A stretch of 64,000 nt of DNA from Paragordius varius (Eukaryota; Animalia; Nematomorpha): NCBI GenBank assembly GCA_964247055.1, contig OZ176054.1, positions 13,330,001-13,394,000 on the forward strand, written 5' to 3'. How positions within the stretch are numbered: the stretch's first letter is position 1; each line of letters opens with the position of its first letter. Made by a program: the position numbers and the translations under genes. The notes below the pieces were generated by a model, which had not been told where the DNA came from, did not search any database, and was given only the letters and a program-made list of their open reading frames with translations. Of this stretch, positions 918 to 43,556 are shown one piece after another.

Positions 918-3900
918 AAAAATCAATCAAAACGTGTGGGTTTCTTAAAATTCATTAGTCGTTAACATATACGCATATTCCGTATTATAATAATGAATGA
1001 AAAGTATTTTAAACTGAATACAAAATATTAAATGATATGTGCAACCCCTTAATAGTAGCAAACACCTTAACTTGTTAAAATATTAATCATACTAAAATTA
1101 TTTGATTTTTCAGTTTAGTTATATTATTTATTACAAAGGGGAGTTTTAGGGTATTAAAAAAATAATTATCCCATAAATTATTAAAAAAATTTTAGAGTAA
1201 AAACTGAAATTATACAGACACAAAGTAAAAATATAAAGACAAATATTTTTTTAAAAGACAACCATACCTCCTTATAAGCTAGTTAGTTGCAATTGTAAAA
1301 TATAGAATTGATTGTGTTAGTATTATATATCTTTCTCTATTTCACACTTTGTTATTTAAAACAATGAGTTATATTGTAATTAAATCTAGATTTAAAAAGT
1401 ATGGGGTTGTCTTTTTTACAAATGTCCGTATAATTATATCCACAATTAACTGCAAAGCTTTACTGTTTTTGTTGTATTAGATCAGCATCCACAGGATTTA
1501 TAATGTCAAAAGACCATTGAGAAGGCAATAAATGTTCCATCCAAACTTTAAGTCTTTGAAGAGCGAAATAACCCTGGTGGGATTGTAGCAAATTTTCATT
1601 TAAGTTATTAAAAGTATTTTCATCAACATTTAAAGTTATAATATCAAGGTTGGGTAAGGATGGTATCATAATACAATGTATATCAAGAGGTGAATTATTA
1701 TTAATGCTAAATAACTCTAAATACTGTTTCTCAAACATTTCACAATGGAATTCGTCATTGTTAAATGATGGCGGATTACTTGAGTTTGTATATTCCTTTA
1801 ATACTGTGCTCTAAAATAAAACACGTATTGCACGCATAAAATAATAGAAAAAAAATTAATTTTATATATATACCATTTACAAATCAAATTCACCCTCGAA
1901 CAATTCAGATTCACTCTTACAGTCATGTCTATATAGAATTGTCTTTTTTTTTATTTAAATGATTATAATTTTTTTTTAATTGTTTTGATGTTTGATATGT
2001 CAACTTTCAACATGCGCATTTTTAAGCCTTAAAATAATAGTAGCCTATTTATTGTAAGAATTTTTAATTTATAATTAAAAGATATTGCAAAATATTATTC
2101 TTGATGCACAACATGCACATATTGTAATTTTTATCTTTTGTAAAATATTAATTATAAAATTTTATTAATAAAGTTTAAACACACATAACCAAAATATAAT
2201 TTAAAAGATAAAAATATTTATTGATTATAATATTTAAATAAATTTATAATTGTTTTCATTTTCTAGGGGTTTTCTTTGCATACATTCCAACAAAGTGAAG
2301 AAAAATTATAATAATTTTTTAGATTTTTTTCCCTTCTCTCTTCGCAAAGTCTTGCAATTTTATTATGTTGCTCTAGAGGGGTACTACACCGGGGTTTTTT
2401 ATCATATTGATGTTTAATCTCATGAAAAAAACATTCAATGGGATTCAGTTGTGGCGAATATGGAGGTAAATAAACTATTTTATTCCTTAGGTCACCTAAC
2501 ACCGCGGCTTTGTGAATAGGTGCATTATCGCAAACTATTATTGAACTTTCAGGAATTCTTGTTAAACATTCCGTCAAAAAAATTCGAAAATCATCGCCTC
2601 TAAAGGCGCCTTCTTTTGTTCTGTAATTAATAACTCCCTGACAACCAATCATACATATCAATGAAACATTTTTTCCTAAAATAAATTCAAATTTTACCTT
2701 TGTTAAATCCCTCTACAATAGGAGATTTGCCCTTTGGAGCTCTACCCCATATATTTGTAAGTTTCAAACTGAAGCCTGACTCATCAATAAAAAAAACTTT
2801 TTCCTGTGGAATATCTTTCACCAATCTGGCATAATTATAACGCTTTTCTATATTCTCTGGGGTGTTTCTTTCCCGAGGTTGTAAAATACACCTCTTTCGA
2901 GTAATTTCTGAATCCGAGAGAATTTTGTAAATAGTTGCTCTGCATACTTTAATATGGTCTGGTATTTGTTCCATTATTTCATCGATTGTTAATTCACAAT
3001 CATTGTTTATTAATCTTTTGACAGCATCTATTATTTCTGGATTTCTGAATTTGTTACGCCGACCAGATTTATTTCTATCAGTAGAATTCCCAAGAATTAT
3101 TTTTCTTCTTAATATATTTATAGATGTTAAGGACATATCAAAATAATCCAAAAAATAATTTGAGGGTTTTTCCAAATTTTTGGGATCAAAAAATAATTTT
3201 TTAGCTCTATCTATTTTTTCCTTATTCCAAAAATTATGTTCTAAAATTTAAAAATATTAATACTTTTATGTTTTATTTTTTCACGAGATAATTCATTTTC
3301 ATTCAATGGAACATCCAAATCAGATACTACGAATTGTTATTTTTAAATACTTGAAGACTCTTCACTTGTATCCGATTCAAAAGTATAAACTGAGGGAGCT
3401 ATGTTTTCCTTTAATATTGGATTTTGTTCTGAACTTTTATTTTTTAATATAAACCTTCAAGTACACTAGCTGCCGAGCAAAGAAGAAATAATGGGTTATC
3501 GTTGATATTCATAATTTTTTAAAATAACTCTAGATTTATGATTTATTTCTTTATATATATAGAGATTAATTGGACATCTGCTTGGGTTTTCTTATATATT
3601 TTAAGTGCATGTTAAAAACCCCTAGAAAATGAAAACATATATTAAACTTGGTTATCATAAATTACATGGGCATGTTGTAGATAAAATGTTCAAGAATAAT
3701 ATTTTGCAACATCTTTTAATTATAAATTAAAAATTCTTACACTAAATAGGCTATTATTATTTTAAGGCTTAAAAATGCGCATGTTGAAAGTTGACATATC
3801 AAACATCAAAACAATTAAAAAAAAATTATAATCATTTAAATAAAAAAAAAGACAATTCTATATAGACATGACTGTAAATAAATTTTGTGTTTTTTAAAAT

Positions 3901-6245
3901 TAAATATAACCATTTTTTCATATTTTTAAAAAATGAAATTTTGGTTGCAATTCAATAATACTGAAAAAATAATATATGCGCCATAAATAATATATTTCAT
4001 ATAAATGATGATGGGTTATATTAGCCCGAAAACACATAATTCATTTTTAGTGAAATCAAATTGTTCAAGGAGGAATTTATATTGTTCAAAGGTGAAAATG
4101 AATTGTAAATGGTATATATATGGACAATAAAAATTATTTTTAAAGGCACAAAAACCCAATAAGTAAAAATTCAATATCTTTTTAATGCTTAAATTGTATG
4201 ATTACATTTGTGAAATATATTAAATATCGAATATCGCTTCTTCATTTTACAATTCAAAGAGGTAAGTTATATAAAAAATAGAGATGCCTTTAATCTTTAT
4301 AATTTATAATTTTACTGTAATGAAGAGACATCAAATTTTTTATTTCTCCTCGTCAATATACTGGACAAAAACATAAACATAATATAAAATAAATACTTAA
4401 TGTATTTTTTCAAAAAACTTACGGTTATGTTTTAAAATTATACAATTATTTTTTTCAATATTTTCATACGGTATTTAATTAAAATAAGAAAAGAGGTTTA
4501 TTTCAATCTTTTATAATAAAATTTTTAAAAACGAAATAATCAATTTAGAATTTTACATGCGTAATTTTAGTGTAATGTTGAATAGTTTGCAACAATTGTG
4601 TTGTAATGTATTCATTTAATGGATTATCAACCTTCACTTCTTGAGATGAGTTTTGCATTGTCAGCATATTGAAAATTAACCAGGGAATCTATGTGACATG
4701 AAAATAAAAAAAATAAGTAAACAGTATTACAGTAATAATTGAAATTATTATACGAATAAAGGATATATATTTTTTTGAAAAGACACCCAACCATACTTTT
4801 TGGATCGGAATTTTTTAATAAAAGGACAAGTGTAATTCCATTCTATATATATATAAGTAACATCAATAGATATATTTTCGTTAAATTTTTCATACTTTTT
4901 AACAATTTTAACAAATAATTTAAAAATTTAATCATTTTTATAACAAATAAAATAAAATATATATTTGTAAAATAACACATTAATAAATATGTATGATATT
5001 TTGAATTAGCAAAATAAATTTAAATTTTTCCTTAATATAATACTCTAAAGGGTTGAGAAATAGTTAAAAAACACCATTTAAATATAAATATATAACCTTG
5101 ACTGCAAGCGAATTCAATATTTCAACATACAATGCCAAATACGAGATGGGTAAAAAATGGCAGAATATATTATGTAACCATTTGCAAAGAGCTAAATTCC
5201 AATCGAAATCACAGTAAATTTCACGAAACGTTTCGCCATATTTTTCAAGGATAAGCAAATCTTTATTATCAGTGTGCCTCTATAAAAGTCAAATTAAATA
5301 TGAAAAAAATCCCTTTTTAATAAAAGGATAACCATATTTATGCAATCTTAGTTTATGTATATTATCTTTTCGCACGTTACAAAATAAAGAATAGAGATGT
5401 AATTGATAACAATCAATTTTATATCGAGAACAAAAAAAAATTAAATAATTTTTTATTATATATACATTTGGTTTATATTTTAGTCTTAAAATTAAGAATG
5501 AAAATCAATATTTGACAAAAAACGACCTAAGTCATCCATATTAGATATATGATTTAAACCTGTATTTAAAGAGCAGAATAAAAATTATTTAATGTTAAAT
5601 CACATATTCCAAAACGCCGTATTTAACGCTAAATATATGTTATACCAAAAAAAGAAAAAAAGATAGGGCTAATATTTTGGAAAAATGGCAAGATCTCCTT
5701 TTTTATATATCTTACCCTTAATTTCGACATTTGTTCCATAAAATTTTATAAAATTAACAATAACAAATGGTGGTAAAACTTTAATCGAAGTTTCATCATA
5801 AAAGTTTGACAAAGCATTCCAACTCCTTTCAAAAATGCTAATTTCTGGCTGACTCCATGTATATTTAGGCAAATTAGTTTGCCAATCTTCAGTTCGCATT
5901 TCAAGATTTTGAATAAGTTCCATTTCTGCGGCCATATCAAGCTTATCTTGCATATCAAATCGTTTGGGCATCTTATAATCAGTCTCATTGCAAACTTCGC
6001 ACAAATTATCTGATGATTCAATATCAATAATTTCATCTAAGCTACTAATAATTCATAAAAAGAGTTTACTTTGAAATATTTGATTGATTTTGTGTAAACA
6101 TATAGGTGGTGGGCCAAGCGAATTTGGTTTTTGCCGTTAAAACTTGGTAAGGTGATGCATAGGAATGATCGTGTTCTAATGATGGTTTATCCGTTTGTAA
6201 CTTTTTCAAAATTTTCAAGATAAATTTTTCATCGTAAAAGCCCAT
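1..6245 (-). CDS. KANSL3: KANSL3 (NSL complex subunit 3)-like, copy A; multi-exon, 3' exons lie before the window start
   Basis: Spliced translation MGFYDEKF..EHDHSYA..EIIDIES..EDWQTNLPKYTWSQPEISIFERSWNAL..WNLALCKWLHNIF..LYVEILNSLAVKIPWLIFNML..ILWSWGLSSLFAAY follows, from memory, human KANSL3 (LDHSYA, PIDVE, EDWEEHVNRTGWT, WDTKLIQWLH, LKGKIPTLIDRML, IILIGWNTGALVAC). Approximate exons: 6245-6070, 6044-~5764, ~5279-5100, ~4689-4558, ~1810-1463, ~613-391. GT-AG junctions are in frame; intron 6045-6069 is 25 nt. Confidence 0.85.
862..912. repeat. (TA)n microsatellite; paralogous tracts at ~26965-26978 and ~51046-51112
   Basis: Direct dinucleotide run whose length differs between cassette copies. 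Confidence 0.95.
1195..1452. mobile_element. MITE family 1 (CAGTAAAAACTGAAATTATACGGA... TIR), degenerate copy in KANSL3 intron
   Basis: Imperfect palindrome with arms gtaaaaactgaaattatac..aaagacaaatattttt..gacaaccatac and the reverse complement. Shared by copies B (~27260-27530) and C (~51395-51650). Confidence 0.75.
1920..3874 (-). mobile_element. IS630-Tc1-mariner DNA transposon, full length (1955 bp), long TIRs, TA target duplication
   Basis: TIR CAGTCATGTCTATATAGAATTGTC... of ~185 bp (1920-~2103 vs ~3690-3874) with few mismatches; TA flanks at 1918-1919 and 3875-3876. The empty site is present in copy C (ttcactctaaaataaattttgtg, ~52115). Confidence 0.95.
2263..3512 (-). CDS. DDE transposase, 384 aa after removing four micro-introns
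   Basis: Exons 3512-3455, 3428-3351, 3326-3264, 3240-2698, 2675-2263 total 1155 nt in one frame. Motifs: VFFIDESGF, RAPKG, GKNVSLI, IVCDNAPIH, YLPPYSPQLNPIE. The 22-nt intron 2676-2697 joins the two predicted ORFs. The three 5' introns are inferred from GT-AG ends and frame restoration. Confidence 0.88.
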
Positions 6246-6317
6246 TATGAAACCGAAATGTTAAAAGTTTCAAATATCTGTGCAAAAAAACTAGAGTTGA
6301 TACGGTAGTGTTTAAAA
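6246..6317. promoter_or_regulatory. Putative bidirectional promoter/5' region between divergent KANSL3 and IFT122-like start codons
   Basis: 72 bp between ATGs in A (6245/6318) and B (30301/30374), 67 bp in C (54339/54407); sequence conserved in all three copies. Confidence 0.55.
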
Positions 6318-9300
6318 ATGAAAAATGTTTCTTTTAAACACTATTACGCTTATTATGTCCAAGATGATTGTATCAATGTTATTGATCTGGCAAACAATGT
6401 ATCAGGTATCAATTTGTATTTGATTTTAGGGACCTTAAATTGTCGTTACTCAGTGGATTTCTTAAATTTGGACAATAATATTTTAACAGTTTAATAAAAA
6501 TAAAATTTTTAGGTTTTTGTTAACAAGTTCCTAATTTTATATGTCTATCAGTTACATACTGATGACCATTCTGTGATATTTGAAGGATTATATAAAACAT
6601 CTTACAAACACGTTATAAAAGATTTGCAAACTACGTTTACTAATATCTGTGTTTTGTCGGAACCGAAAAATATTATTCTTACCTTTAACGATAAATATAT
6701 TACCATTAACTTTGCTCAACCTAAAAAATATGTTACGAAAGAAGATATCCACATTTTTCCTTCACAAATCATTGCCTTAAAAATTGTTAATGATTGCCAT
6801 TTTATTATAATTTGTACAGAAATAGATGAGCAGCTTAATCTATTTGAGTCTCAATTTGACATGAATACGAATGAACTTGTTAATATCAACAAATTACTAA
6901 CTTTACCACATACATTTGAGGCAAATAATAACAATACTTTTGATATGTATTTATCTGCGGAAAACGCCTTTGTAGCCATATTAAAGGGTCAGAAACAGAC
7001 AAATTCAAATTTACTTTTATATGAAATTTTGGATGATTGGAAACTTTGCAAAGTAACATAAATATATATTCAACATACTAGATGACAATAAATGACGGGA
7101 GCGATTTAGATTGTCAAATTATGTCTTTTAAATGGCACGAAAAAATTGACCAATTTGGCTGCATTTCACGTTTTAACGAAACGCAAAGAGTCATTGAATG
7201 CATAGTTTTTGATGTGGCAAAACACCAAACGATTTTTTCAACTGACTTGCAAAACCAACAGGTTGTGTTAATTTGTTATATATTTGATATTTTGTTGCAC
7301 AAACGACTACTTTTTTCTTTCAAACTAAACCAGGCATGTCCTAATTTGTCTTTATAAAGTTTATGATTTAAAAAATTTCTGAATATTGTATATCGATTTG
7401 GAATCCAATTTTTTTTATTTTTTTTGCAGATAAAATATTATATATGTAGGTATTAGACATCCATCCACTCCTATTTATATTGATAGTTTATGCTTATATT
7501 CTATACTTTTCGTGTAAATAATGCATTTTAATTTGCACTAAATGGAAAAACTGTCGCTAATTTTATATTCCAAACAAATTATACTAAAGATATTCTGTAA
7601 TAAGTATTAAATCTTTAATGTTGATCACTTTTATGCGTTCACCATAAATTTATCTGTTTAAATACAAGGTTTATAGAATGACACTCGCATTTTTTTCACG
7701 TGCTCGGCAGCTATAATATTTTGCAAATTTGAATAGATTAAAATTATGTATATCAAAAATTTAGATTGAGAATATTGTACTCTTTCGATCAAAAACCATA
7801 TATTTCCTTGCATCCATAAGCTGCGATCAACCCATCGTAACCATAAAAATACCCAAAAAATTAATTGAGGACTACAAATACGTTTCAACTGCATCATCAC
7901 TCAAAGATGTGGAAAATGAATTGTTAGTTTTGCAACCAGAAAACTCAACTAAAATAATGATTGATAAAACAGCACAAATGTTTGAATCGAAAATTGTTCA
8001 ATCTGACCCTCTTGAGATTATGGAAAATATTGAGATATTATTACATAATGGAGATTACATTGGTGCGTACAATAACTTGTGTACAATATTGCAAAGAAAA
8101 CCTAAGTATATTAGGTATTAAAGTTAGTTTTATTTTAATCTTTTTTTAGTTTGGGTTCAAGCTGATTCGTATAAGATTTTATATATGGACCAATGCTGTT
8201 TTTACCCAAAAATTAAGCATAACTAAAAATATATACAAATTTATTCCAAAAAAAATTGATAACGTTTTATTTTGAGTGGAAAAATTATATTACGCAGAGG
8301 TACATTTTAATACATAATTAATATTATTATACTGTTTTTCACATTAGGTTGTGTTAAGAAATAAGGGTTTAAAACTTGGATTTTTCTTGAAAAACCTAAC
8401 GATTTATGTGCCTCAATACATACCAAATTTAATCAATTTTTATTGTTAAAATGTTTAGGGATATCTGTTACAAATTCCTCATTTCAATTCTTACCATGGC
8501 AAATTCACAAACAAATAACCACAAGAATATCAATCAAGAATTTAACAGTGATACATTTTCTATTAACGAAAATACTAAAGAAACCAACTTGGAGAAAACT
8601 GAAATAGATGACATGGCAAATAAAGTGTGTACCATGTATATTAATACAGTGCTGTTCCCTCAACATTTTATCCTTAAGAATGAAAATATCCCAGAAAAGA
8701 ATGAACATCCTACCCTAGAAACGTTAATACAAGAAATGGCTCAATATATTTCACATGGTTGCTGTATTTCTAACTCCTTTCAAACTAATTTCGATACGCT
8801 TTGTTCTTGGTATTTTGTAGGTTTTTTTGATTATTCAATAAATCGAGAAAATGCCAGTGAACGACTTTTTTGGATTCTCCAGTTAAATGGGAATGAAAAT
8901 TATTCTTCTTATCAAAAACATTACCATAACAAATCTTTGAAAACAGTTAATTCCGGTCACCCTATAAAATATTTAACTATTCGGGTTTGTTTCACACTTT
9001 GGCTTGAATGTTACCAACAAGTTAATGAACGTGATGAATTGTCACACAGTAATCTTAATATTCATTCTATATATTCAACAACAGGTTTTAAACATATATC
9101 CCATTGGGAAAATATATATATTTCATTTTTTAATCTTTTTGAATGATAAAAAAGATATAGTTATTATAAATTCATATTAAAATATTAATGAAATTCTTTA
9201 TTAAATGACTCTTATAAACACCAATTACATCTCAAATACACGCTCGAACATTTATAAAACTTAAACGTTTCAAATTTACACATAAAATATGTATTTAAAA

Positions 9301-12300
9301 ATTAAGACTTTAATATATAACATAATGCATCATGTATCCTATCAATAAGTTGTTGAATTAGCCTCAAAACACATATTTTTGGGGGTAAATTTGAAATATT
9401 TAAGGGTGAACTTAGATATTAAGGGTAAATTTGAAGTATTTAAGTGTTGATTTGATAGTTTAAGGGGGAATTTAAAATATTTATATGGTAATATTTAAGT
9501 TGTAAAATGGTAAAATATATTTTTTGCAAATTCATGCTTACAGTTATAACCAAATGTATCACACCTTTACAAACCCTTATTCATAACCATTATCAATTTT
9601 CAATGCCTCAAAAAACACTGAAATCAGAACAAATCAAACCAATAAATGTGACAAATATTGCGACACACTTTGTTTTACATTTCATTCGCGGACTTTTGAT
9701 TCAAAGGATGTTTGCTAATGCTGGCCGTCTTATATGGATTCTAAAAGATTTTTACGTTAAGTCATCAGGTTGTTTATTATACAATTTAAATTTTTTTTCA
9801 AGCTTTTATAGAATATTCTGGAAATAAAGAGCAAAATTATATAGTTAAATCTTAAACGAGAAATTAAAAGACAAAAATTATTTACCTTGATTCTTTGTAT
9901 AATTGAGTGTGTTACCAATTTCCACATCTTTATTATTAATCTGCAATCCGAATTGATGGGTAAAAAAGAAATATAGCCAAATAAGCAATAGGTTTAAATT
10001 GTTAACCCACTCAATTATATAATATAAAATTAAAATTTTAAATAGGTTATTTGGGTAAAATTAAGGCCTGTAAAAGCAACTATGGTTTTCTTTTAAAAAA
10101 ATATTTGTCTTTATTCTGGGACCTTTGTCTGTTTAATTTTATTAATTTGATAAAAAACAATCATACTCATTTTTTTCAGTAACACTAAATGATGAGGCAA
10201 GAACCGAGAATTATAATTATAATGTATCAACACAAACTTCATTGGTGCAAACATTACAATTTTTCAGCCTTTTTTACTTTGCTTACGATAAAATTCAACA
10301 TTTCCTGGTAAGTAAATAAGTATGTATGTTGTTCGACCGATTCTGTGAATAAACTATGCATGTAAATATTTAATTAGTAAAAGTCTCTGTGGTGTTGTCT
10401 CGTATCATCATTGAACATACATATCTCTCTGGTGTTGTCCGTCTCATCATTATATATACACACATGTCTCTGTGGTGTTGTCTCATATCATCATTGAACA
10501 CACATACATGTATTTGTGGTGTTGTTTCGTATCATCATTGAACACACATACATAGCTCTAATGCATGATTTACACCGTTTACGATTCAAATTCACCCTAA
10601 AATAAATTATCTGTTTAGCATCTAATATAAATCATCATTAAAGAAATGTATTCTTATGGCAGACTTATTATTTATTCAGTATTATAGAAATTTTAAACGA
10701 AATTTCATTTCATAAAAATATAAAAATTATGGGTAATATTTAATCTTGAAAAACACATTTTATTTTTTAGGGTTCTGAATTGTTTAAGGGTGATTTTGAA
10801 TTGTTTGGTGAAAACTTTAAATAATATATAAATTTAATTTATTGGTTGATGAGTAATTCTTGAATGGGGAAATAGTTGCATATGGTAGAAATATCAATAA
10901 TAATTTAATGTACTAATTAACGTTAAAATATATAGATAATTAACTTTTACCGCATGTTGTTTTTAACCATACACTACTGTATTTTTATAAATATATATAA
11001 TTTAAACATGAAACCACGAGAAAATATCAGATTTGCTGACATATATTAATTTTGTTTATATAATTTCTAAAGATTCATATCACCAATAATATAGCTGTTT
11101 ACTGTATAAATATATAAGGATCAATTAAAAATTTTTTTTTTATTTTTTCATACAGAATACGGCATTTAGCAATATTGGCTTAGATGAGGTTCGAATGACC
11201 GTTAGATATTTAGCTTTGATGGCTTTTAAAATCATTCTCTCAAACAAAGATATGGGCAGTGCAAAGAAATTAGATAAATACGCCCTTAAAACATCCTTTC
11301 AATCACCTGATAATAATAATATGTTGTTGTTATGGGAAGAAATGATTGAATTTATAACATTACAAGAAAATAAAAATGAAATGATGATTGAAATTATATC
11401 AAACATTTTCTGTTTGCTTTTACGATTACATCATCATCAAACGAATGATTGTGGTCTCATAACCCCAAGGATTGGACATTTGCTGGAAAAATATAGTCCT
11501 CATTTATTGAAACATTATTCAAAATCACCTCAAGGCGAATCAACAAGTGTCGAAAGTGAAAATCTTTTTAAGTAAGACTCTATATATATATGTTCTAAAT
11601 TGTCCATTTTAGGTTAATTGTTACAAGAAATTTTAATTATGAAATATGTAAAGTTGCACAATTTGTAATAATACGTTGCAGATATATATGTAATCAATAT
11701 GCTTTTTGTGGGATTCGAATTTTATACTAACTTAAAAATTTGGATTATTTTTACTAAAAAATCGGAATTAATTATAAACATACGCTTATTACTTTATAAG
11801 CAGTGAAAAATCTCTTTAAGAAGGGGGGTATACTAAATATATATAATATGTTTACACACAGGATACCAAATCCATTGTTTGAAAGGGTAACTCTACAAGA
11901 ATGTCAAGATATTTTGAAAGGAAAAAAACTTTCCTCCGACATTTTCTGTTACAATTGTCAAATGGTGACAGATTTTCAAATTGATTTTAACGCAAAAAAT
12001 TTTTGCGGAAACCAGACAACAATGCTTAATACAGCCCTAAATCCCACGATACTATGTCAAGAGTGTTTGAAACCTTTTATATTTTCCATGTTAACTTTTG
12101 GTATATTTTTATATTAAAATAATTTTGGATAAATAAATTATATAATGTCGATTTTTATGAGAAGGGGGCGCGCCATTAATATCATATAACTCTAATATAG
12201 AAAATATTAAGATAAATGGATATGATTTATTTTATAAAAAATAACTAGTCTTTTAATTTTTAAATTCGGCTTTCTATTTTAAAAAAAAGATTTTTACCTA

Positions 12301-13098
12301 ACAAGTTCACCTTTTTCAAATCAAATTAGACTTTTAAATCTAATCAGAAACTCCTATATATTTTAATTTACGCATATGTAGAGATATTGCCTTTGAGTTT
12401 AGTAGACGAATTCAACGCCACTGCAAAACCAGATAAGTTTGATTTCAATCATTTTGAAATGGGAAATAATGGGACAGCGCATTATGTTAATATCTTGCCT
12501 GATATAATGTTGGCTCAATGTAAAAATTGCAAACAAGTAATTTTAAAGTTTTATTCAAATTTCGTTTAAAAACTCCAACGATTTTATAAAGCAACAGTTA
12601 TATAAAAGTCTCCACATCTTTACAGTAAAAATTGAAATTTTACGGACAAAACTTAAAATTATAAAGATAAATATTTTTTTCAAATAGACAACCATATTTT
12701 TTAAATCTATATTTTTTTTACTCATTTTTTGAATTTCAAAGTATAAAATGGCGATGTGCATTAGTCTAATCAATCTGTGTATAATTGTAAAAAATGATTT
12801 ATATAGGATTAATTAAGGTTTAAAAAAGTATGGTTTTTTTTCGAAAAAAATTGTCCTTATATTATTACGTTTTGTCCGTATATAATTTTAATTTTTTCTG
12901 TAAGACACAATATTTATTAAATATTTTTTTAAAAAATGTTACTTTTATATGTTTTTAGAATATAAAAATTGCTATTTTTTTTATTTAATCCTTTATCAAT
13001 GAATATTGTAGATGTTTTATGCCGAAGAATGGGAATTTTATTTGATTCAACACAAACAATGTCCGTTTTGTAAAATGTTGCATGAAAATATCCAATAA
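6318..13098 (+). CDS. IFT122: Divergent IFT122-like intraflagellar transport A subunit, copy A; multi-exon, lacks N-terminal propeller, intactness unresolved
   Basis: The C-terminus FCYNC..LCQECLKPFIFSMLTFEILPL..HYVNILPDIMLAQCKNCKQ|MFYAEEWEFYLIQHKQCPFC parallels remembered human IFT122 LCYRC..[91 protein letters not shown] parallels [31 protein letters not shown]. The N-terminus HYYAYYVQDDCINVIDL..TLNCRYSVDFLNL parallels RYAYRDSMTDVIVQHL..RIKCKELVKKIAI. Introns include 6406-6429 (24 nt), 6489-6512 (24 nt) and 7053-7081 (29 nt). Exons in ~7262-7765 and ~8120-8458 were not resolved. Confidence 0.75.
10383..10552. repeat. Intronic ~40-44-bp minisatellite (catgtctctgtggtgttgtctcgtatcatcattgaacatacata), ~4 units
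   Basis: Tandem units downstream of the IQHFL|gtaagt donor; the paralogue in B (~34566-34690) has ~3 units. Confidence 0.9.
12623..12900. mobile_element. MITE family 1 in last IFT122 intron
   Basis: TA|CAGTAAAAATTGAAATTTTACGGACAAAAC ... TTTTCTG|TA. A near-identical copy lies at 61981-62258; related copies at ~36780-37040 and ~43050-43305. Confidence 0.8.
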
Positions 13099-13643: not shown

Positions 13644-14456
13644 TTATGATGAAGTTGATTCACTGCCTGAATCCGAAGAACTTGTAGTACTCTGACTAGT
13701 ACTCGAACTACTTGTTGTGCTACTTGAAGAACTTTTCGATGATGGGATTTTGCCTTTAGTTTTTTTATTACTTTTTGAAGTGTTGCTTTTTTCACTCGAA
13801 GTTGTTGAAGTGACTGAGGAAGTTGAAGATTTTTTCTTAACAAGGTTTTCTTTCTTTTCTTGAGGTTTTTTGCCATTCTTTTGGGCCAATGGTGGGGGCA
13901 TTTGTAAATCCTTTTTTCCTGTTGGGACTTTTGGTTTTGATGAAGGTAAACCTTGATTAGTAGTTGGAGTGTGGGTAGAGAGGGGTTTATTGGCTAAATT
14001 TTTGACTTCAACATTATCACATGGCAGTGGGACTGGTATTTTATCGCTAGTTTTTAATTTTTTAGCAGCGACACTTGAAAGGCTTTTTGCATCATTCACT
14101 TCTTTTTGCGTTTCTGTTGTTAAAGTGGACTCTGACGAAGATGAAGAACTTGATGTTGTCAGAACTTTTGCTTGAGGTTCCTTAACTTTGGCTGTTTTTG
14201 TCTCTGAGAGTCCTGATGTTTCGTTTTTATCCAATTTATCTGATAAGATAGGTGATTGGGAATCTCCAGCTAGTCTAGTCTCATCATCGGGTTTCTTTCC
14301 ATTTTCAAGGAGGGAAGGGGTGGTTGAGTCCATATGACCATTGGTGTGAATTGTTGTCAAATCATTATTTATTTCACCTAAATCCTGTGGAAATGCAAAA
14401 TATATTTATACATACACATTTATTATCAGCTGCTTGGAGCATTTTAGTTTAGACAT
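13644..14456 (-). CDS. Lys/Ser/Thr-rich low-complexity protein of unknown function, ~259 aa, copy A
   Basis: Exon 1 14456-14418 (MSKLKCSKQLIIN), 33-nt intron 14385-14417, exon 2 14384-13644. The same ATG, donor and acceptor are kept in paralogues at ~38664 and ~45885. Confidence 0.7.
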
Positions 14457-16769: not shown

Positions 16770-17356
16770 TATGTTTTTATAAAAAAAAATTTTGAGAATT
16801 TAACTGAGTTACAGCGGAATACAGACCCTTAATGAGGAGATAATACATAAGTCATTTTCGGGCATCCTGAAAACTTCTTTTTAAAAACACTCAATAAAAA
16901 TTTGGTTTTAAACATAATTAATATAAAATTTTTATTATTGCAATTAAATTCTAAAAATGAATGAATTTAAGAGAGTAAATTTGATTCCCACAAGTAATTT
17001 TAAACGTTAAAAATAAAATTAAAATACAAACTATAACAGATTTGAAAAAAAGAGGGTATTAAATTGTGATTTCAAGATGGTTATTTCTATACCATTTGCA
17101 CTTCAAGAGTGTCCTTGAACATTTCAAGTTGGTCCTTAAACAATTCAAGTTGGTCCTCGAACATTTCAAGTTGGTCATTGAACAATTTAAGTTGTTCCTT
17201 TGACTTTTTTGTTTTGTTTTAACCATAAATTTCGCATTTTTTATCTAATTATTTTTAACCTAATTTGTATTTATAATATATTTATTCATATAAATATAAT
17301 AAAATTTATTCAAAAACGACTTTTATGTTTCATACTGATTTTCCAATTTAACTAAA

Positions 17357-17651
17357 TGTTAGGCAAATTTGAAAGATATACTTTATTTTTATAATATTTT
17401 TCTGTGTTATATGCAAATGTGATATACATACTTTGGTTATATATTATAACTTTAACCCCTTATTTGAATTGTATTATTTTTGATATTTTTTGTGTTATAT
17501 GTAAATATACAACCTTTGTTACTTGGAATGTTATTGATATAATGCAAATCATGGACAGTTAAAATTGCTATATATACACCTTAAAAAAACCAAATAAATA
17601 GTTCAGTTCATTTCACATTTCTTTTATTATCTCTTATCTTAAAAGATAAAA
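17357..17651 (+). repeat. 5' LTR
   Basis: Begins TGTTAGGC, ends AAAAGATAAAA; direct repeat of 20888-21182. Confidence 0.95.
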
Positions 17652-17717
17652 TTGGTGGCAATTCGAGTACCGAACTAAGCTAGTGCTAGTGGAGGTCTTA
17701 CTGATACCCAATCGAAC

Positions 17718-20700
17718 ATGACAACGCCAATCAATCTCGCTAACCTATGCATCGAAAAATATAATGATAATATTAAGTTTGAGGAATACGTTGAGTATAT
17801 GACAAATGTTATGGAGGCAAAAGATATCCCTGTAACAGAACAAGCCCTCAAAACAACCTTGCTTGCGTATGGAGGTCTAATGGTGGTACGCAAAATCAAC
17901 CAACGACTCTATCCGAAAAAGATAAAAGATGCAGAATGGACCGAGATAATGGCAACGGGTTTAAAGGTATTCAATCCCACAAAGTCGAAATTCCAAAGCA
18001 GATTTGAGTTTTTCCGACTTGTGCGGAACAACACCGAATCGTTTACCCAATTTCTAGAACGGGTAAAAATCGCAGCCGAAGAGGCAAAATTTAAGGATTC
18101 AATAGAGGAACGGATTCGAGATGCCTTCGTCATTGGGTTACGGCAACCACAATTGGAAATTGACATACATTCAAGGTATCCCGATGCCGAGATCAACGGA
18201 CAACCCGTGCCTCTAGAAACGATAGTGGATCTCGCACTAGCACACGAGGCTGCCAGGGCTGGCCTTCATAACAATAATGATAATACCAATTATAATAATG
18301 GTAATAATTTAAATCGATTACAACACACCAATAATAATAACAAGGCCATGCGTTCACGACAGCCAACAGCAAAACCCCTAACACATTCGTGCAATCGTTG
18401 TGGTAATAGCCATGGACCAAACAAATGTCCTGCCTGGAACCGCAATTGCAATAAATGCGGAAAACCTCATCACTTCGCAAAAATGTGTAGATCAAAAAAC
18501 ACTGCCAAAAATTTGTTCAACCGCCAGATCCATAGAAAAGCAATGCCAACCTCACCATGGACCGTAAAAATAATGATAAACAACACAGAACAAACGTTTA
18601 TCTATGATACTGGAGCTGACATCAGTGTTATCAGCTTTGACACCTGGAAACAAGTTGGCAAGCCAAATATTAGACCCATACCGCCAGTAAAAGCCTACAA
18701 TAATAGCATAGTACCTCTACTGGGCGTAACAACAGTCACAGTGCAAATCAATGGGCAAAACTTGGGGAACGCAGAATGTTGTGTATTGAAAGAAAAAATG
18801 TCAAAGGCACCGCTCATTTGTGGCTTGGATTGGATCACGAGATTTAACATCGACATTCCTAAAGTACGAATTAACTTTCTTAAACTTGATAAAATTATTG
18901 AAAATTTCCCTAATCTATTTAAAGAGGAATTAGGTTGTTACATTGAGCCAGTTACAATTCATATAGCACCCAATGCCTCCCCCAAAGTTTGGCCTTGCCG
19001 CCGAGTACCGTTTCCCCTAAGAGCAAAAGTTGAAAATGAATTACTAAGATTACAAAAGTTAGACATTTTGGAGCCGATAGATCCCAACCTTACACCTCTG
19101 ACATGGGCCACGCCCACCGTTAATGTGCTCAAAGCGAATGGAGAGGTAAGAATTTGCAGCGATTTTAGAGTTACCATCAACAAGTGGCTCACTGAGGACT
19201 CTCATATCATTCCAACGTTTGATGATTTAGTGAGTAAGATTGGCGAAGGCCAAGTTTTCACTAAGATTGACTTGAAAGATGCCTATCTACAAATGCCCAT
19301 AACCAAAGCACAAGATCTCTTGACAATTGCGACTCACAAAGGATTTTTTCGCTACAAAAGGATGCCTTTCGGACTGTCAACAGCACCAATAATTTTCCAA
19401 CGAGTCATGGACCAGGTTATAAAAGATTGTCCCGGCACTTGTGCATATTTAGATGATGTTTTAGTAACTGGCAAATCTGAACAGGAACATTTAATAAATC
19501 TTAATAATGTTTTAAATCGGTTAGAATTAGCAGGTTTTAGATTAAGAAAAGATAAAATAAAAATTGGTGAACCTTCAGTAAGTTATCTGGGATTTGAAAT
19601 AAGTAATAAATTGCAGAAAGTAATTAAGGCGATTCATAACCAAGATTGGAGTGATGTTGAGTTGGCTGGGTTTACGAATCGGAAGGGAGAGATTTCGTAC
19701 CAATACGGATTGGTCAGTTTAAACGATCGAATTATCATTCCAGAAAGCTTACAGTCAAACGTGGTCAACTACTTACACAGCGGGCACAATAACGTAGAAA
19801 CAATGAAAGCAATGGCAAGGTTCACTTGTTTTTGGCCGAAATTAGAGAACGATTTGGTAAGAAGATACAGTGAGTGTAGTGCATGTCAGATAAACAAGCC
19901 AAGCCTAGTTGAAAATCCGACTTATCATTGGGATCCAAATGCTGCGATATGGGAACGGTTACACATCGATATAGCGGGACCAGTTGACGGGTATTATTGG
20001 TTGTTACTGATTGATAGCTCATCCAAATGGGCGGAAGGGTTCATGTTAAAAAAGGTTAATTCGGTAAACATATTGCATAAACTCGAGGAAACCTTTGCCA
20101 GGTTTGGGTTTCCGAGGACGGTTATTAGTGATAATGCTTCTTATTTTAGTAATTCGTACTTCACATCCACTCTAACAAACTTGGGTATTAAACACGTGAG
20201 GGTAACCCCCTATCATCCTAAAAGTAATGGGATGGTAGAAAGGTTAGTGGGGACCCTCAAGGGCAAGTATAGAAAAATCAAAAATGATAATATTTCACCA
20301 CAAGAAGCCTTCAATACCACTCTATGGTCATATCGTAATTCAATACATGCGACTACAAAAGAAACCCCGTTTCAACTACTCTTCAAACGAGTATCTCAAA
20401 CACCCCTCACCTGGATCAACACAAAAGCAACAATCTTAGACGCACCCCGTCCACGCCGTGAATTCTCAATAAACCAACCCGTAATGATGAGAAACGAACA
20501 AAATGTTGGATGGCGAGCCGGCGATGTTGTTGATAGAACGGGTCTCCTTTCGTACAGTGTGTGGGATCAGGTAAACCAGAAGATTGTCAGAAAGCATGCA
20601 GATCAGTTGAAACACGTAGACCTACCGGCCAACTCAACCGCACCGGTTACTCCAAACAATAGTAATGATAGTAATATAGACAATAACAATAATAATAATG

Positions 20701-20876
20701 ATAGTAGTATTGATAATAATAACAATAGTAATAACAATAATAATGATAAAATAAATGATAATAATAATGATAGTAGCAATGATAACATTAATAATAATAA
20801 TGACAATATCAATGCAAATCCGCACGAGCGACGTTACCCCGAGAGAATTCGGCGACCGCCGGTCCGGTTCTCTTAA
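17718..20876 (+). CDS. Gag-Pol polyprotein (gag with two zinc knuckles, aspartic protease, RT palm, integrase); no RT thumb or RNase H
   Basis: CNRCGNSHGPNKC/CNKCGKPHHFAKMC; FIYDTGADISVI; KIDLKDAY..RMPFGL..YLDDVLV; HSGH..CSAC; LHIDIAGP..VISDNASYF..SNGMVER; Asn-rich tail; terminal RRYPERIRRPPVRF. Confidence 0.93.
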   Translation: MTTPINLANLCIEKYNDNIKFEEYVEYMTNVMEAKDIPVTEQALKTTLLAYGGLMVVRKINQRLYPKKIKDAEWTEIMATGLKVFNPTKSKFQSRFEFFRLVRNNTESFTQFLERVKIAAEEAKFKDSIEERIRDAFVIGLRQPQLEIDIHSRYPDAEINGQPVPLETIVDLALAHEAARAGLHNNNDNTNYNNGNNLNRLQHTNNNNKAMRSRQPTAKPLTHSCNRCGNSHGPNKCPAWNRNCNKCGKPHHFAKMCRSKNTAKNLFNRQIHRKAMPTSPWTVKIMINNTEQTFIYDTGADISVISFDTWKQVGKPNIRPIPPVKAYNNSIVPLLGVTTVTVQINGQNLGNAECCVLKEKMSKAPLICGLDWITRFNIDIPKVRINFLKLDKIIENFPNLFKEELGCYIEPVTIHIAPNASPKVWPCRRVPFPLRAKVENELLRLQKLDILEPIDPNLTPLTWATPTVNVLKANGEVRICSDFRVTINKWLTEDSHIIPTFDDLVSKIGEGQVFTKIDLKDAYLQMPITKAQDLLTIATHKGFFRYKRMPFGLSTAPIIFQRVMDQVIKDCPGTCAYLDDVLVTGKSEQEHLINLNNVLNRLELAGFRLRKDKIKIGEPSVSYLGFEISNKLQKVIKAIHNQDWSDVELAGFTNRKGEISYQYGLVSLNDRIIIPESLQSNVVNYLHSGHNNVETMKAMARFTCFWPKLENDLVRRYSECSACQINKPSLVENPTYHWDPNAAIWERLHIDIAGPVDGYYWLLLIDSSSKWAEGFMLKKVNSVNILHKLEETFARFGFPRTVISDNASYFSNSYFTSTLTNLGIKHVRVTPYHPKSNGMVERLVGTLKGKYRKIKNDNISPQEAFNTTLWSYRNSIHATTKETPFQLLFKRVSQTPLTWINTKATILDAPRPRREFSINQPVMMRNEQNVGWRAGDVVDRTGLLSYSVWDQVNQKIVRKHADQLKHVDLPANSTAPVTPNNSNDSNIDNNNNNNDSSIDNNNNSNNNNNDKINDNNNDSSNDNINNNNDNINANPHERRYPERIRRPPVRFS

Positions 20877-20887
20877 GGGGGAAGTGA

Positions 20888-21182
20888 TGTTAGGCAAATT
20901 TGAAAGATATACTTTATTTTTATAATATTTTTCTGTGTTATATGCAAATGTGATATACATACTTTGGTTATATATTATAACTTTAACCCCTTATTTGAAT
21001 TGTATTATTTTTGATATTTTTTGTGTTATATGTAAATATACAACCTTTGTTACTTGGAATGTTATTGATATAATGCAAATCATGGACAGTTAAAATTGCT
21101 ATATATACACCTTAAAAAAACCAAATAAATAGTTCAGTTCATTTCACATTTCTTTTATTATCTCTTATCTTAAAAGATAAAA
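20888..21182 (+). repeat. 3' LTR
   Basis: Direct repeat of 17357-17651. Confidence 0.95.
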
Positions 21183-24030: not shown

Positions 24031-24763
24031 ATTTTAATTACAGTAAAAATATATACGGACAAAACGTAGACAAATATTATTTCTAACGTTTATATGTTGA
24101 TTTTTTTAAATATACACATTAATCCATACTGCAAAGTATAAAATAGAGATGTAAATTGGTAATGCGCAAATTATGTATTATATTTTAAGTTTTAATTTTG
24201 AATTAATATATCTTGTATTATACAATTTGATTATTCTGGATAAGTTAAATAGCTGCATGATTATTCACAAAACTGCAAATATCCTCGGCGGGTCAAATTC
24301 TCAGTGCTTATATTATGCTACAATTCGTTAGGGAATTATATCATTTTTTCATATTTAGCAATCATCGGAAATTTTGCGCACATTTTAGTAATTGACAGAA
24401 AAATGCCTAAAGCCAAATTATTTAGGGAAATTTCACCTTAAGTTGTTGTAGTTTAAAAAATGGACTCAAAAATTATAAATATCATAAATTCCATTTTATA
24501 TTTTTCAATCAAAAACATCGTTTGCTCTCATTTATTGTGGTATAAATGAAACAATTATTTAGATGGGTTAGAAGGATTAGCTAATAACAAGGCCTCTTTA
24601 TGTTTCCTCTGTTGTTGTTGATAATTGAAAAACTTTAAACTATTCAAGGTGTATTGTTGATCGGTATGTTCGGTTACAATAGCTTTTTCATTATTGTTAA
24701 TTACAACAGTATAATCACCATTGTTATGTGAGTTGGTTAATACTTTGCAATCTAAAACTGACG

Positions 24764-27700
24764 CTAAATGTTGTTTAGGTGGGACAATTCAGAAATTGAG
24801 TTCTTGTAATTTACTGGGATATCATACAAACTTTTAGTATTTTTGCTTGTTGCGGCGGATAATAATGATAAGTTTCCAGAAAATTCCATGTTTTCAGCCT
24901 TGACTCCATTCAAGTGTTTATTAGGGTTAGTTATCAAAGAGGAAAACGTATTTTTATTATTCGGATGATTCAAAGAGCCAATATTAGCAATGTTTTGACC
25001 ATTTCGTTCTTCACAAATTATGATGTCATACAAGGCACTCAAAATACTTCGACTCAGTATGGCGTCAACTTCGTTTTGGGTTAAATTTATCCCCTTCAGA
25101 ACATAATCATTGTTAGCTGAGCTCTCAGTCAACATGATATCTTTATCGGTTAAACCTAAAATGAAGAAAAGATTAAAATACTCAAGTAAATTTATAATTA
25201 TTTTTTTCTCCTATTAAAAAACTCTTAATTATATTATTTTGCGGTTATGAGACCATAAAATGAAAACACTTTGTTTTTATTACGTGCGCGTACTTAGGAA
25301 TCCTATGAAATATACTCCAATTATATTACTCAGCTATTTGAATGTACGAAACCAACTGCGGTAAAACTAATGGAAAGAAAAGCAAAAACAGTCATACTTT
25401 CTCTATATTGAATGTTTTAAATTTCATATATAAATATAAAGATAACTGATAACATACTTTTATATATAGTTCATGTTAATTTTCATAAAGATTATGTAAA
25501 AAATCAAGTTATATAAATGTAAATCTTTTTTTATGGAATTTATTTTACATTTTGCTTTTAAAAAAATTACTGTGAAAATTATATAAAAAACTTTGACTCA
25601 CCAACTACAATACAAGCATTTTGGACTTTCATACGTCCGCGCAAAGTTTCCAACATATACTGATTATTTAAACCGCTAACTGTGTTTCTATCATTAACTA
25701 TAAAGATTGTGGGTGTACTTATTCGATCAAGTCCATACAATTTGGGACCTCCGGCAAATATGTTGATATTTTCTGTGGGTTCTTCTCCAGGGAGTTTAAA
25801 GTTTTTATTTTTTATTGCAAAAATTTTTTCCATTTCAGTAGATTGAGTATTTTGCACTGAAATATTACTACTGGTGCTACAGAAATCGAATGGGAATCCC
25901 AAACAAATGAGTCCATCAAACTTAAGTTCAATACAAGCCTGGTATGATATACATTACAAAAAAAATTGGTATTTGACATTTACTATATTGATTTTATTGT
26001 TTTTGATAATATGCTTGTTAACTGATATGGTTACATTTTATAATAAAACTAGTGTTACATTTTTCATTAAATTATAAGCGAAGGTATTTACATAGAGGTT
26101 AACGTAAGAAATATAAATAGCATTCTACTGGTAAATAAGACAATTTAAACTGCTATTTAATTTTTACAATATGGTATAAAAGGTTACTCAACTACATAAA
26201 CATTCTCGTGCTCAACGGTCCTAATTACATAATAGAGAAATTCCAACTTTCATATCAGGGTTTTGATAAAAAACTTAGACTTTTATACTGCATATTTAAG
26301 GCCTTTTCTTATCACGTAAACGTAAAACAATTTTAAAAAATGCAAAATTGATTGTAGATAATCCTTAATTCTATCTACCATCAATTAGTTTATTTGTGTT
26401 GTCTTGTAAAAAAATACTTTAACCATAAAACATTATCAGCGCAGAAAATAGTTTATAAAACAAATTTGATAAGAATTTACATAAGCAGCAAAGAGTGAGG
26501 AGATACCCCAAGACCATAAAATTGTACGCACATTATTATTAATGCTTTTACTATTGGCATTGGTTGAGACAACCTTTATATTTGATCTTATGACATGTTT
26601 GAGTTTTTCCTTCAAACGATTCAAGTAAGTTGTCGTGAATGAGACCGAATCTTGACTACTAAATTCATTGCCTTTGTTTGAATCTGTCGCCCTATACAAT
26701 GATGAAAAAAGAAAATTGAGTAAAATTAGTAAATTAATTGCCGTTTTTTTTGGATTTGAGAAAAAATGTCGAGTATTTTGCATTTTAACCTTTTGACATG
26801 AACAGTTTTAAAATAGATGATTATTATAGTTAGATAATTCCAATAAAATGACTTTCTTTGGATAATAGAGAAAAATTATATTGGCAAACATACATTGATT
26901 TTAATTAATATGTTGTGTTGCTAATATAAGCCATAGAAATGTAATTTTTCATTTGTAATGATCATATATATATATATATTAAAAAACAATCAAAACGTGT
27001 GGGTTTCTTAAAATTCATTAGTCGTTAACATATACGCATATTCCGTATTATAATAATGAATGAAAAGTATTTTAAACTGAATACAAAATATTAAATGATA
27101 TGTGCAACCCCTTAATAGTAGCAAACACCTTAACTTGTTAAAATATTAATCATACTAAAATTATTTGATTTTTCAGTTTAGTTATATTATTTATTACAAA
27201 GGGGAGTTTTAGGGTATTAAAAAAATAATTATCCCATAAATTATTAAAAAAATTTTAGAGTAAAAACTGAAATTATACAGACACAAAGTAAAAATATAAA
27301 GACAAATATTTTTTTTAAAAGACAACCATACCTCCTTATAAGCTAGTTAGTTGCAATTGTAATATTTAGAATTGATTGTGTTAGTATTATATATCTTTCT
27401 CTATTTCACACTTTGTCACTTAAAACAATGAGTTATATTGTAATTAACTCTAGATTTAAAAAGTATGGGGTTGTCTTTTAGGGCAAAAAATATTGTACAT
27501 TTTGTCCGTATAATTATATCCACAATTAACTGAAAAGCTTTACTGTTTTTGTTGTATTAGATCAGCATCCACAGGATTAATAATGTCAAAAGACCATTGA
27601 GAAGGCAATAAATGTTCCATCCAAACTTTAAGTCTTTGAAGAGCGAAATAACCCTCGTGAGATTGTAACAAATTTCCATTTAAGTTATTAAAAGTATTTT

Positions 27701-36300: not shown

Positions 36301-36477
36301 GCGCTATTAATATCATATTTTAGCAAAATATAAAGTATAAAGATATGGTTTATTTTATAAAAAATAAGTAGTCTTTTTATTTTAAATTTAGGATCTTTAG
36401 AAAAAAACGATTTTTCTTGAAAATTTCGGCTTTTTTAATCAAAATAGTCCTTTAAATTTAATTAAATTTGAAACTCC

Positions 36478-36513
<36 letters not shown>

Positions 36514-37269
36514 TTTACGCATATGTAGAGATATTGCCTTTGAGTTTAGTTGTAGACGAATGCCACACCACTGCAAAACCAGAAAAGTTTGATTTCAATC
36601 ATTTTGAAATGGGAAATAATGGGACAGCGCATTATGTTAATATCTTGCCTGATATAATGTTGTCTCAATGTAAGAATTGTAAACAGGTATACATTGTTTT
36701 ACAATAAAATTGATGTTTTTTTCGTTTAAAAACTCCAACGATTTTATAGAGCAACAGTTTTAATAAAGTCCACATTTTTCAATTTGAAATTTTATGGACA
36801 AAACGTAAAATTATAAAGAAATTTTTATCAAAAAGTCAACCATACTTTTTAAATAACTCATTTTTTGAATTGCAACGTATAGAGATGTATATTGGTAACA
36901 CCAATATCATGTGTTTTATCATTGTAAAAAAATGATTTATATAGGATTCATTAAGGTTTAAAAAAGTATGGGTTTTTTCGAAAAAAATTGTCTTTATATT
37001 TTTACGTTTTGTCCGTATATAGTTTTAATTTTTCTGTAAGACACAATGGTTATTGTATATTTTTGTTTTCAATAAAAATATTGCATTGGGATTGAAATTT
37101 GAATGAAAAATATTACTATATGTTTGTAGAATATATAAAGTTCTAATTTTTTATATTAAATCTTTATCTATGAATATTGTAGATGTTTTATGCCGAAGAA
37201 TGGGAATTTTATTTGATTCAACACAAACAATGTCCGTTTTGTAAAATGTTACATGAAAAAATTCAATAA
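30374..37269 (+). CDS. IFT122: IFT122-like, copy B
   Basis: Same exon series as copy A (ORFs 30630, 31178, 31979, 32569, 33706, 35237, 35935, 36468); last exon MFYAEEW..LHEKIQ* ends at 37269. Confidence 0.72.
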
Positions 37270-37868
37270 ATTTATTATGTCCATTCAGAATTTAATTATG
37301 ACACATAGTATTTGACTAAATACAAATTTTGGTTAAAAGCAGATATATAGTACTCCTACTGTATATAATTGACTAAATGGAAGCGATCTATAAATGCAAC
37401 TAAATATAAAATAATACCATAAGTATGTAAAAAAAGAAATGTGTTGTATTCATAAATATAAAACATAAAAATGACTTAATTTAAAAAAAAATTTATCCTT
37501 AATTTATTTTTATAACTTTTGTGTGATAAGAAATGAAATTGGTGGTATTTACATCCTTATTTCGTAACCCAAATTGATACTTATGGTGTGAAAAAAACGT
37601 CATATTAGTTATATTTATCATGTCTTTTATTTTAAGTATTTCCTGTACATCTAATTTTTTATTTTCCGCAACTTTAAACGATTGATAAAAGTGTGGTGAG
37701 ATAATATACAACCATTTACTTTTAAAGTATTAAGTATTTTAAATATAATAGTTTAAATTAAAAACGATAGTTACAAATATTTAGTGGCTAAAAATATAGC
37801 TTTTTTACATAAATACCAGTATTAATTTTAAGGTCATTCATAAATTTCTTTATTGTGCAACAAATAAA

Positions 37869-42743: not shown

Positions 42744-42779
<36 letters not shown>

Positions 42780-43468: not shown

Positions 43469-43556
43469 ATTTATTATGCCCATTTAAAATCAGAATAAAC
43501 AAATTATAACATATATTTGTTGAGACTAAATAATTTTGGTTAAAAGCAGATATATA

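Follow-up and report, generated by a model that had tools for sequence, protein, structure and literature searches.

IFT122 (DAF-10 in C. elegans) is a central subunit of intraflagellar transport complex A (IFT-A). The 'head' core of the solved IFT-A structures consists of the C-terminal TPRs and zinc-binding domain of IFT122 together with IFT140 and IFT144. In these structures, the WD40-A propeller of IFT122 is the dock for the C-terminal helices of IFT139, and IFT140 wraps the IFT122 zinc-binding domains and TPR9-12 (PMC10066299). Two propellers in tandem are the defining feature of IFT122 and its paralogues, and the IFT-A 'base' module is made up of IFT121, the N-terminal half of IFT122, IFT139 and IFT43 (PMC10023715). 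Here, an IFT122-like gene is described that is present in three tandem copies (A, B and C) on a stretch of 64,000 nucleotides of contig OZ176054.1 (forward-strand positions 13,330,001 to 13,394,000; the window).

For the hairworms, ciliary genes were surveyed by reciprocal BLAST (Pachinger et al. 2025, PMC12094185, Table S1B). In the gordiid Acutogordius, IFT140 and WDR19 (IFT144) were present, and IFT122, IFT139, IFT121 and IFT43, all four of the listed dynein-2 genes and nearly all transition-zone genes were not found; marine Nectonema has IFT122 in the same survey, with the identifier g5829.t1 in the published annotation. The gene in the window is probably a descendant of IFT122, maintained by selection as three tandem paralogues of approximately 970 amino acids (aa) with a single degenerate beta-propeller followed by an alpha-solenoid and a pair of zinc ribbons of the IFT122 type, one propeller having been lost. 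The lost propeller was most probably WD40-A, removed by 5' truncation.

Gene model, selection and IFT122 descent

The gene model was built by aligning the three copies and tracking splice phases. This gave a plus-strand gene of 11 exons with the ATG at 6318 (A), 30374 (B) and 54407 (C) and predicted products of 971 aa, 985 aa, and 967 aa, respectively. Every intron is GT-AG, the phases are consistent, the exon structure is identical in the three copies, and 30 of 30 splice-site pairs are conserved. The interval 6318-7052 corresponds to exons 1-3, and introns 1-3 of copy A are micro-introns (24 nt, 24 nt, and 29 nt in length). Splicing of introns 2 and 3 is required, since stops or frame shifts lie inside them and their lengths vary among A, B, and C (24/25/24 nt and 29/32/27 nt). 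Exon 11 was located by searching for the conserved CxxC downstream, and its acceptor is conserved. Two other models were rejected: an exon 10 ending at the stop 12567-12569, given the conserved donor and the exon 11 found, and an intronic element at the open reading frame (ORF) 11129-11572, which the splice phases make exon 8.

Among the three copies, the pairwise ratio of nonsynonymous to synonymous substitution rates (dN/dS) is 0.36-0.44 at a dS of 0.16-0.20 (p ≤ 4e-9 vs neutrality), and the branch dN/dS is 0.35-0.53 on each of the three branches. Indels are multiples of three in 11 of 11 cases in exons and in 37 of 196 cases in introns (p about 1e-8). No premature stop was seen, where simulated neutral substitution at the observed per-lineage rate predicts 11-18 per copy. 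By the pN/pS ratio, the most constrained exons are exon 11 (0.05) and then exon 1 (0.22). Taken together, dN/dS, the in-frame indels and the absence of stops indicate that the three copies are maintained by selection; copies A, B, and C are not pseudogenes.

Database searches were run exon by exon, and the joined 971-aa model served for translation and dN/dS. Exon 11 matched PF25143 (Zn_ribbon_IFT122_C) with E=1.1e-5; the match scores 25.7 bits, where the cut-off is 27.3, and spans positions 12-35 of the 38 in the profile. The first CxxC of this C-terminal ribbon sits on exon 10, outside the exon 11 match. Exon 9 matched PF25144 (Zn_ribbon_IFT122) with E=0.21 (A), 0.074 (B), and 0.0038 (C), and with E=0.099 in a separate Pfam run; the matches are below the gathering score and at the right position in all copies. 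The exons gave no match to the other IFT-A zinc-finger families in Pfam. When the 28 aa of exon 11 were searched against 177,635 PDB sequences, the four best matches were the IFT122 chains 8bbf_C, 8fgw_B, 8bbe_C and 8hmc_A, which come from two entry sets and align at the extreme C-terminus of IFT122 (human residues 1213-1234 of 1241). Copies A, B, and C each retain the full set of eight zinc-ligand cysteines in the two ribbons. Descent from IFT122 is well supported by the sequence of these approximately 50 C-terminal residues.

An earlier note, made from the letters of the window, had assigned the gene to IFT122 by an alignment of its N-terminus to approximately residue 300 of the human protein. 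The hidden Markov model (HMM) searches, named there as a refuting test, uphold the homology through the C-terminal ribbons (exon 11, then exon 9), and the alignment itself was confirmed by no tool, exons 1-8 giving no IFT122 match by phmmer, hmmsearch or Pfam. The putative likeness to human residue 300 or so is a lead. In PDB, no IFT122 match was obtained by phmmer or hmmsearch with exon 1, the read-through of exons 1-2, or exons 3, 4, 5, 6, and 9, and exons 6-8 gave no Pfam or PDB sequence match for a TPR-like solenoid. Word searches with exon 3 and exon 8, with a length window that admits fragments only, were empty. A profile of exon 3 run with HMMER against 1.84 billion representatives gave a single, spurious match, to a coiled-coil repeat protein, and an exact-product look-up of the exon 6 ORF gave nothing.

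The predicted protein consists of approximately 340 aa that are beta-rich, then approximately 520 aa that are helical, and then approximately 110 aa with the zinc ribbons. The ESM features of exon 3 are nearest to the propellers of VPS11, VPS41, Nup133, clathrin and RIC1 (second propeller), at 0.88-0.91, and those of exon 8 to HEAT, TPR, and ARM solenoid fragments, at 0.93-0.95. DSSP of the AlphaFold 2 (AF2) models assigned 11 strands and 1 helix to exon 3, with a predicted local distance difference test score (pLDDT) of 36.5, and 7 helices and no strands to exon 6 (pLDDT 33.7). From these models, whose pLDDT is too low for meaningful fold matches, the secondary-structure tendency alone was used. 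Hydrophobic-moment and Chou-Fasman profiles of the joined protein were uninformative in this AT-biased proteome. The C-terminal anchor, residue 944 here and residue 1213 in the human protein, gives a deficit of 269 aa, about one propeller, and the beta-rich stretch has space for one seven-bladed propeller, not two. In a descendant of IFT122, such a one-propeller architecture means that one of the two defining N-terminal propellers is gone. The beta-rich region, which has no sequence match to any IFT122 propeller, would be WD40-B. The 'propeller-less' subunit of the earlier note gives way to a protein that retains a propeller-like N-terminal region; its other claim, that one propeller is missing, agrees indirectly with the length and the secondary-structure layout.

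The 5' end and alternative explanations

As had been read from the letters, the ATG at 6318 opens MKNVSFKHYYAYY..., and a divergent minus-strand start lies approximately 70 bp upstream (ORF from 6248). The same start is found at 30374 and 54407 with two mismatches each per 32 nt. The head-to-head gap is 69 bp long in both A and B, and 64 bp long in C. The earlier note called this divergent gene KANSL3; its start was borne out, and for its identity there is a KANSL3_1st match in Pfam at E=0.023 on 5067-5279, which is a weak hint. The AG 9 nt 5' of the ATG is present in A (GGTAG/TGT) and B (GGTAG/TAT) and not in C (GGTGGTGTA), also as stated there. In-frame stops precede the ATG in every copy: a TAG at -12 in A and B, which contains the AG, and a TAA at -6 in C, where there is also a TGA. 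A second AG, approximately 25 nt 5' of the ATG, is conserved, and stops part it from the ATG in all copies. No upstream exon can thus continue its frame through exon 1. With these stops and no usable AG in copy C, the earlier argument against a conserved upstream coding exon in cis holds.

Since each unit recurs, all the sequence from the end of one gene to the start of the next could be inspected. The conserved ORFs in it are on the minus strand, and the conserved plus-strand ORFs are short or antisense shadows. None of the 69 plus-strand ORFs of at least 40 aa in the full upstream unit gave a WD40 or IFT122 match in Pfam, a search with little power to detect a propeller that is highly diverged or split into small pieces, and no conserved plus-strand coding block was seen within one full upstream repeat unit. 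From its pN/pS, exon 1 behaves as coding. The coding sequence probably begins at ATG 6318. For WD40-A itself, the product length, the 269-aa deficit, the upstream stops and the lack of a WD40 match in the flanking unit all agree in its absence, with limited sensitivity for a highly diverged or distant WD40-A.

The alternative that survives best, although it is unlikely, is an ordinary two-propeller IFT122 with overlooked WD40-A exons, which would be located at a distance upstream, past the minus-strand genes or within them, or would be small and very diverged. They would be spliced to exon 2 or 3, and exon 1 would then serve as an alternative first exon. The retained propeller is itself invisible to Pfam and HMMER, and a WD40-A diverged to the same degree, in exons of fewer than 40 codons, would escape. 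Such a gene would require its own upstream exons in all three units, however, and it has to contend with the in-frame stops of every copy, the lack of an acceptor in copy C and an exon 1 that is among the most constrained. The 6 kb upstream are also full of conserved minus-strand ORFs, with no independent plus-strand block in the 24-kb unit.

Slightly less likely still is that WD40-A was retained and WD40-B was lost through an internal deletion. This would also leave a one-propeller IFT122, one that had lost other partners, and the tools assign the surviving propeller to neither position. The general WD40 model of Pfam normally detects the first propeller of IFT122 and not the second. The surviving propeller has no match to this model, which argues against its being WD40-A, and a 5' truncation takes one event beside a new promoter. 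Residues 6-60 may resemble the human sequence at the WD40-A/B junction, a likeness that is a lead.

A split gene, proposed in the earlier note, is quite unlikely. WD40-A would come from a separate gene elsewhere and be joined non-covalently or by trans-splicing of two pre-mRNAs. Nothing direct favours this, and the very short divergent gap (69 bp) leaves room for an unusual formation of the 5' end. Against it, IFT139, the published partner of WD40-A, was not found in the gordiid table, so that the known reason to keep WD40-A is gone.

There is little to be said for a coat-like propeller/solenoid protein other than IFT122, either a VPS protein of the HOPS/CORVET type or an IFT-A paralogue, that naturally has one propeller and is like IFT122 only in short zinc-ribbon motifs. 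Proteins of the VPS type usually have approximately 950 aa and combine a single propeller with a solenoid and a zinc domain at the C-terminus. The VPS11 and VPS41 propellers are among the nearest ESM neighbours of exon 3, and the IFT122-specific evidence spans fewer than 60 residues in all. Two IFT122-specific Pfam models nevertheless match in the correct order and spacing, with no VPS, RING or IFT121 model, and the best four PDB sequences for exon 11 are IFT122 C-termini. The class C VPS proteins VPS11, VPS18, and VPS41 are characterised by repeats of the clathrin-heavy-chain type and by a RING-H2 or family-specific zinc finger at the C-terminus. No VPS, Clathrin or RING family of Pfam was found on any exon at E ≤ 1-10.

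A decaying relic, with three recent pseudogene copies of a cilium gene whose 5' part was lost along with cilia, is highly improbable: dN/dS near 0.4 is moderately high, the divergence from other IFT122s is extreme and a degenerate fourth partial copy exists, but the three full ORFs are intact at a dS at which many stops are expected per copy, and the in-frame exon indels, the kept splice-site pairs and the branch dN/dS speak against decay.

Several points weigh against descent from IFT122 with loss of WD40-A, the reading preferred here. Exons 1-8 are without a detectable sequence relative in any search, that of the 1.84 billion representatives included, so the homology of the propeller and TPR parts to IFT122 is drawn from their position. 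Confidence is very low in both AF2 models (pLDDT 34-37). The choice of the lost propeller is based on contiguity and on the N-terminal alignment that no tool confirmed. WD40-A was looked for in one window, and a separate gene for it, though improbable, may lie elsewhere in the genome. Finally, the ortholog table covers Acutogordius, which is possibly not the species analysed here.

Should the preferred reading hold, the loss of IFT139 would have made WD40-A, its docking propeller, dispensable. The truncated IFT122 would most likely still pair with IFT140 and IFT144 via its strongly conserved C-terminus and could be part of a residual 'head'-type IFT-A module with a non-ciliary role. The partners, the function and which propeller was lost are what we infer here. 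The gene would be the 'missing' gordiid IFT122, conserving best the part that serves the retained partners. A 'repurposed derivative', another suggestion of the earlier note, would be consistent with the purifying selection and the published hairworm gene-loss tables. Tentatively, an animal without cilia might even have retained a remodelled 'head' module of IFT-A and multiplied it in tandem. In this module, an IFT122 without the IFT139-docking propeller clamps IFT140/IFT144 via its zinc-binding domain.

Horsehair worms are cited as having lost most ciliary genes, and here an IFT122 descendant would be present and hidden: the gene is too diverged for BLAST and HMM searches outside approximately 50 C-terminal residues, and introns of 24-29 nt are probably skipped by gene finders. 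The gene is real and looks ordinary, but its history is unusual. As an intact, triplicated gene under purifying selection, it probably has a use without cilia; the 'lost' IFT122 may survive in a cut-down and probably non-ciliary form. It has apparently lost the propeller to which IFT139 binds, and IFT139 is reported missing too. It conserves best the zinc domain to which IFT140 and IFT144 bind, and both of these are reported as present. The gene makes a cilium-independent, coat-like function of IFT-A subunits a directly testable question, and calls of 'gene loss' in fast-evolving genomes with micro-introns can be artefacts. A remodelled head module, if true, would be a natural experiment on non-ciliary, coat-like trafficking by IFT-A, whether ancestral or newly acquired.

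Tandem units and features of the window

A unit of approximately 24 kb is repeated three times in tandem across the window, with offsets at the gene of approximately 24,056 and 24,033 bases. Each unit carries the plus-strand IFT122-like gene and its divergent minus-strand neighbour. The window is AT-rich, with a GC content of approximately 26%; the published value for Gordionus montsenyensis is 26.9%. The coordinates of the gene copies and the neighbour are given in Table 1.

Table 1 Coordinates of the IFT122-like gene copies and adjoining features in the window
Feature	Coordinates	Strand	Description
Divergent neighbour, unit A	3876-6248	minus	KANSL3-like label, weak Pfam hint; triplicated along with the unit
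Head-to-head gap, copy A	6249-6317		69 bp between the minus-strand ATG (complement 6246-6248) and the IFT122-like ATG; in-frame TAG 6306-6308
Exon 1, copy A	6318-6405	plus	Start codon, residues 1-29 + 1 nt; ATG kept in three copies; pN/pS 0.22
Micro-intron 1	6406-6429	plus	24 nt, GT-AG; in frame and stop-free; presumably spliced
Exon 2, copy A	6430-6488	plus	Copy alignment and splice phase
Micro-intron 2	6489-6512	plus	24/25/24 nt in A/B/C; holds a stop
Exon 3, copy A	6513-7052	plus	180 aa, beta-rich, propeller-like
Micro-intron 3	7053-7081	plus	29 nt in A, 32 nt in B, 27 nt in C; removal required
Exon 4, copy A	7082-7261	plus	Copy alignment and splice phase
Exon 5, copy A	7765-8114	plus	Likely end of the beta-rich part and start of the helical part; presumed boundary
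Exon 6, copy A	8459-9048	plus	196 aa, helical; in-frame indels of 3, 12, 24, and 3 nt between copies
Exon 7, copy A	9544-9755	plus	Copy alignment and splice phase
Exon 8, copy A	11156-11571	plus	138 aa, alpha-solenoid-like; least different exon between copies
Exon 9, copy A	11862-12100	plus	First zinc ribbon, CxxC ... CxxC then PFIFS
Exon 10, copy A	12382-12536	plus	First CxxC of the C-terminal zinc ribbon at its 3' end; donor CAA/GTAATT
Exon 11, copy A	13012-13098	plus	28 aa + stop; second half of the C-terminal zinc ribbon; stop overlaps AATAAA
Copy B, 985 aa, intact	30374-37269	plus	
Copy B, exons 1-6	30374-30461, 30486-30544, 30570-31106, 31139-31318, 31835-32184, 32577-33205	plus	
Copy B, exons 7-11	33755-33969, 35288-35703, 35994-36232, 36529-36686, 37183-37269	plus	
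Copy C, 967 aa, intact	54407-62491	plus	
Copy C, exons 1-6	54407-54494, 54519-54577, 54602-55141, 55169-55345, 56080-56429, 56849-57435	plus	
Copy C, exons 7-11	57925-58139, 60305-60717, 61008-61243, 61737-61888, 62405-62491	plus	
Partial copy D, exons 8-11 only	40447-43556	plus	Degenerate, inside unit B

Over exons 9-10, copies D and B share 92% identity. The acceptor and first codons of exon 11 are deleted in copy D, which makes it a pseudogene fragment. Copies A and B are identical (100%) over approximately 475 bp (11379-11854 and 35511-35986), covering the end of exon 8 and intron 8, and their flanks differ by 8-20%; the tract looks like a recent gene conversion. In intron 7, a 44-nt tandem repeat has few units in copy A (10396-10603) and extends over approximately 1.1 kb in copy C (58666-59803). 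The same repeat is also found at 40473-40895, and a separate tandem array with a 21-nt period is found at 43906-44692. Just 3' of the IFT122-like gene, there is a conserved minus-strand ORF of 253 aa (13647-14405) with no Pfam match; its homologues are at 37765-38684, 45100-46357, and 63650-64000, and it is duplicated twice inside unit B.

Two insertions are particular to unit A. One, of approximately 2 kb (1897-3875), is not in units B and C and has Tc1/IS630-like transposase ORFs inside (2266-3247, minus strand). The other is a long terminal repeat (LTR) retrotransposon at 17356-21182 with two identical 296-bp LTRs (17356-17651 and 20887-21182) and a single open gag-pol frame of 1,065 aa (17679-20873). 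Its GC content is approximately 40% vs 26% around it; this contrast, its presence in unit A only and the identical LTRs point to a very recent insertion. Further minus-strand ORFs at 24558-25953 (77, 148, and 124 aa) have homologues at 48661-50100, with 79-93% aa identity between units. One of this set gave a DUF4457 match at E=0.032, which is not significant.

Comparison with known systems

With IFT122, the gene shares two zinc ribbons of the IFT122 type (the first by weak matches), correctly ordered and with eight of eight cysteines, and a predicted layout of beta-propeller, alpha-solenoid, and zinc-binding domain, the length of the solenoid and zinc part being near that of the human protein. 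Unlike IFT122, it has one propeller-sized beta region and not two, is approximately 270 aa shorter and has propeller and TPR parts that are unrecognisable by HMM. It also differs from the usual IFT122 in that three paralogues lie in tandem, and the lineage that has them is one for which the loss of most ciliary genes is reported.

Nematomorph ciliary genes were reportedly surveyed by Cunha et al. in 2023. In the survey by Pachinger et al. (PMC12094185, Table S1B), hairworms keep IFT140, WDR19, IFT88, IFT172, and IFT52 and lack dynein-2 and nearly all transition-zone genes. IFT122 is listed there only in Nectonema. The present gene would be a cryptic IFT122 of a gordiid that escaped reciprocal BLAST, and the micro-introns probably made gene finders miss it too.

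According to their abstracts, IFT-A in Wg signalling in Drosophila (PMC6294004) is a precedent for IFT function without a cilium, and the IFT genes retained by non-flagellated algae (bioRxiv 10.64898/2026.02.05.698958) are a precedent for persistence without one; both concern full-length proteins, and the abstracts describe neither domain loss nor gene amplification. In mouse, as far as PMC10066299 recounts it, the Ift122 allele sopb has a start-site lesion with relatively normal cilium morphology, and, by contrast, first-exon deletions and early truncations abolish IFT-A complex formation. As described there, sopb is a laboratory mutation in a ciliated animal, whereas the hairworm short form would be a fixed natural state. 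That hairworms keep some IFT genes was already known; what appears to be new, judged from sequence, is a diverged one-propeller gordiid IFT122 in three copies.

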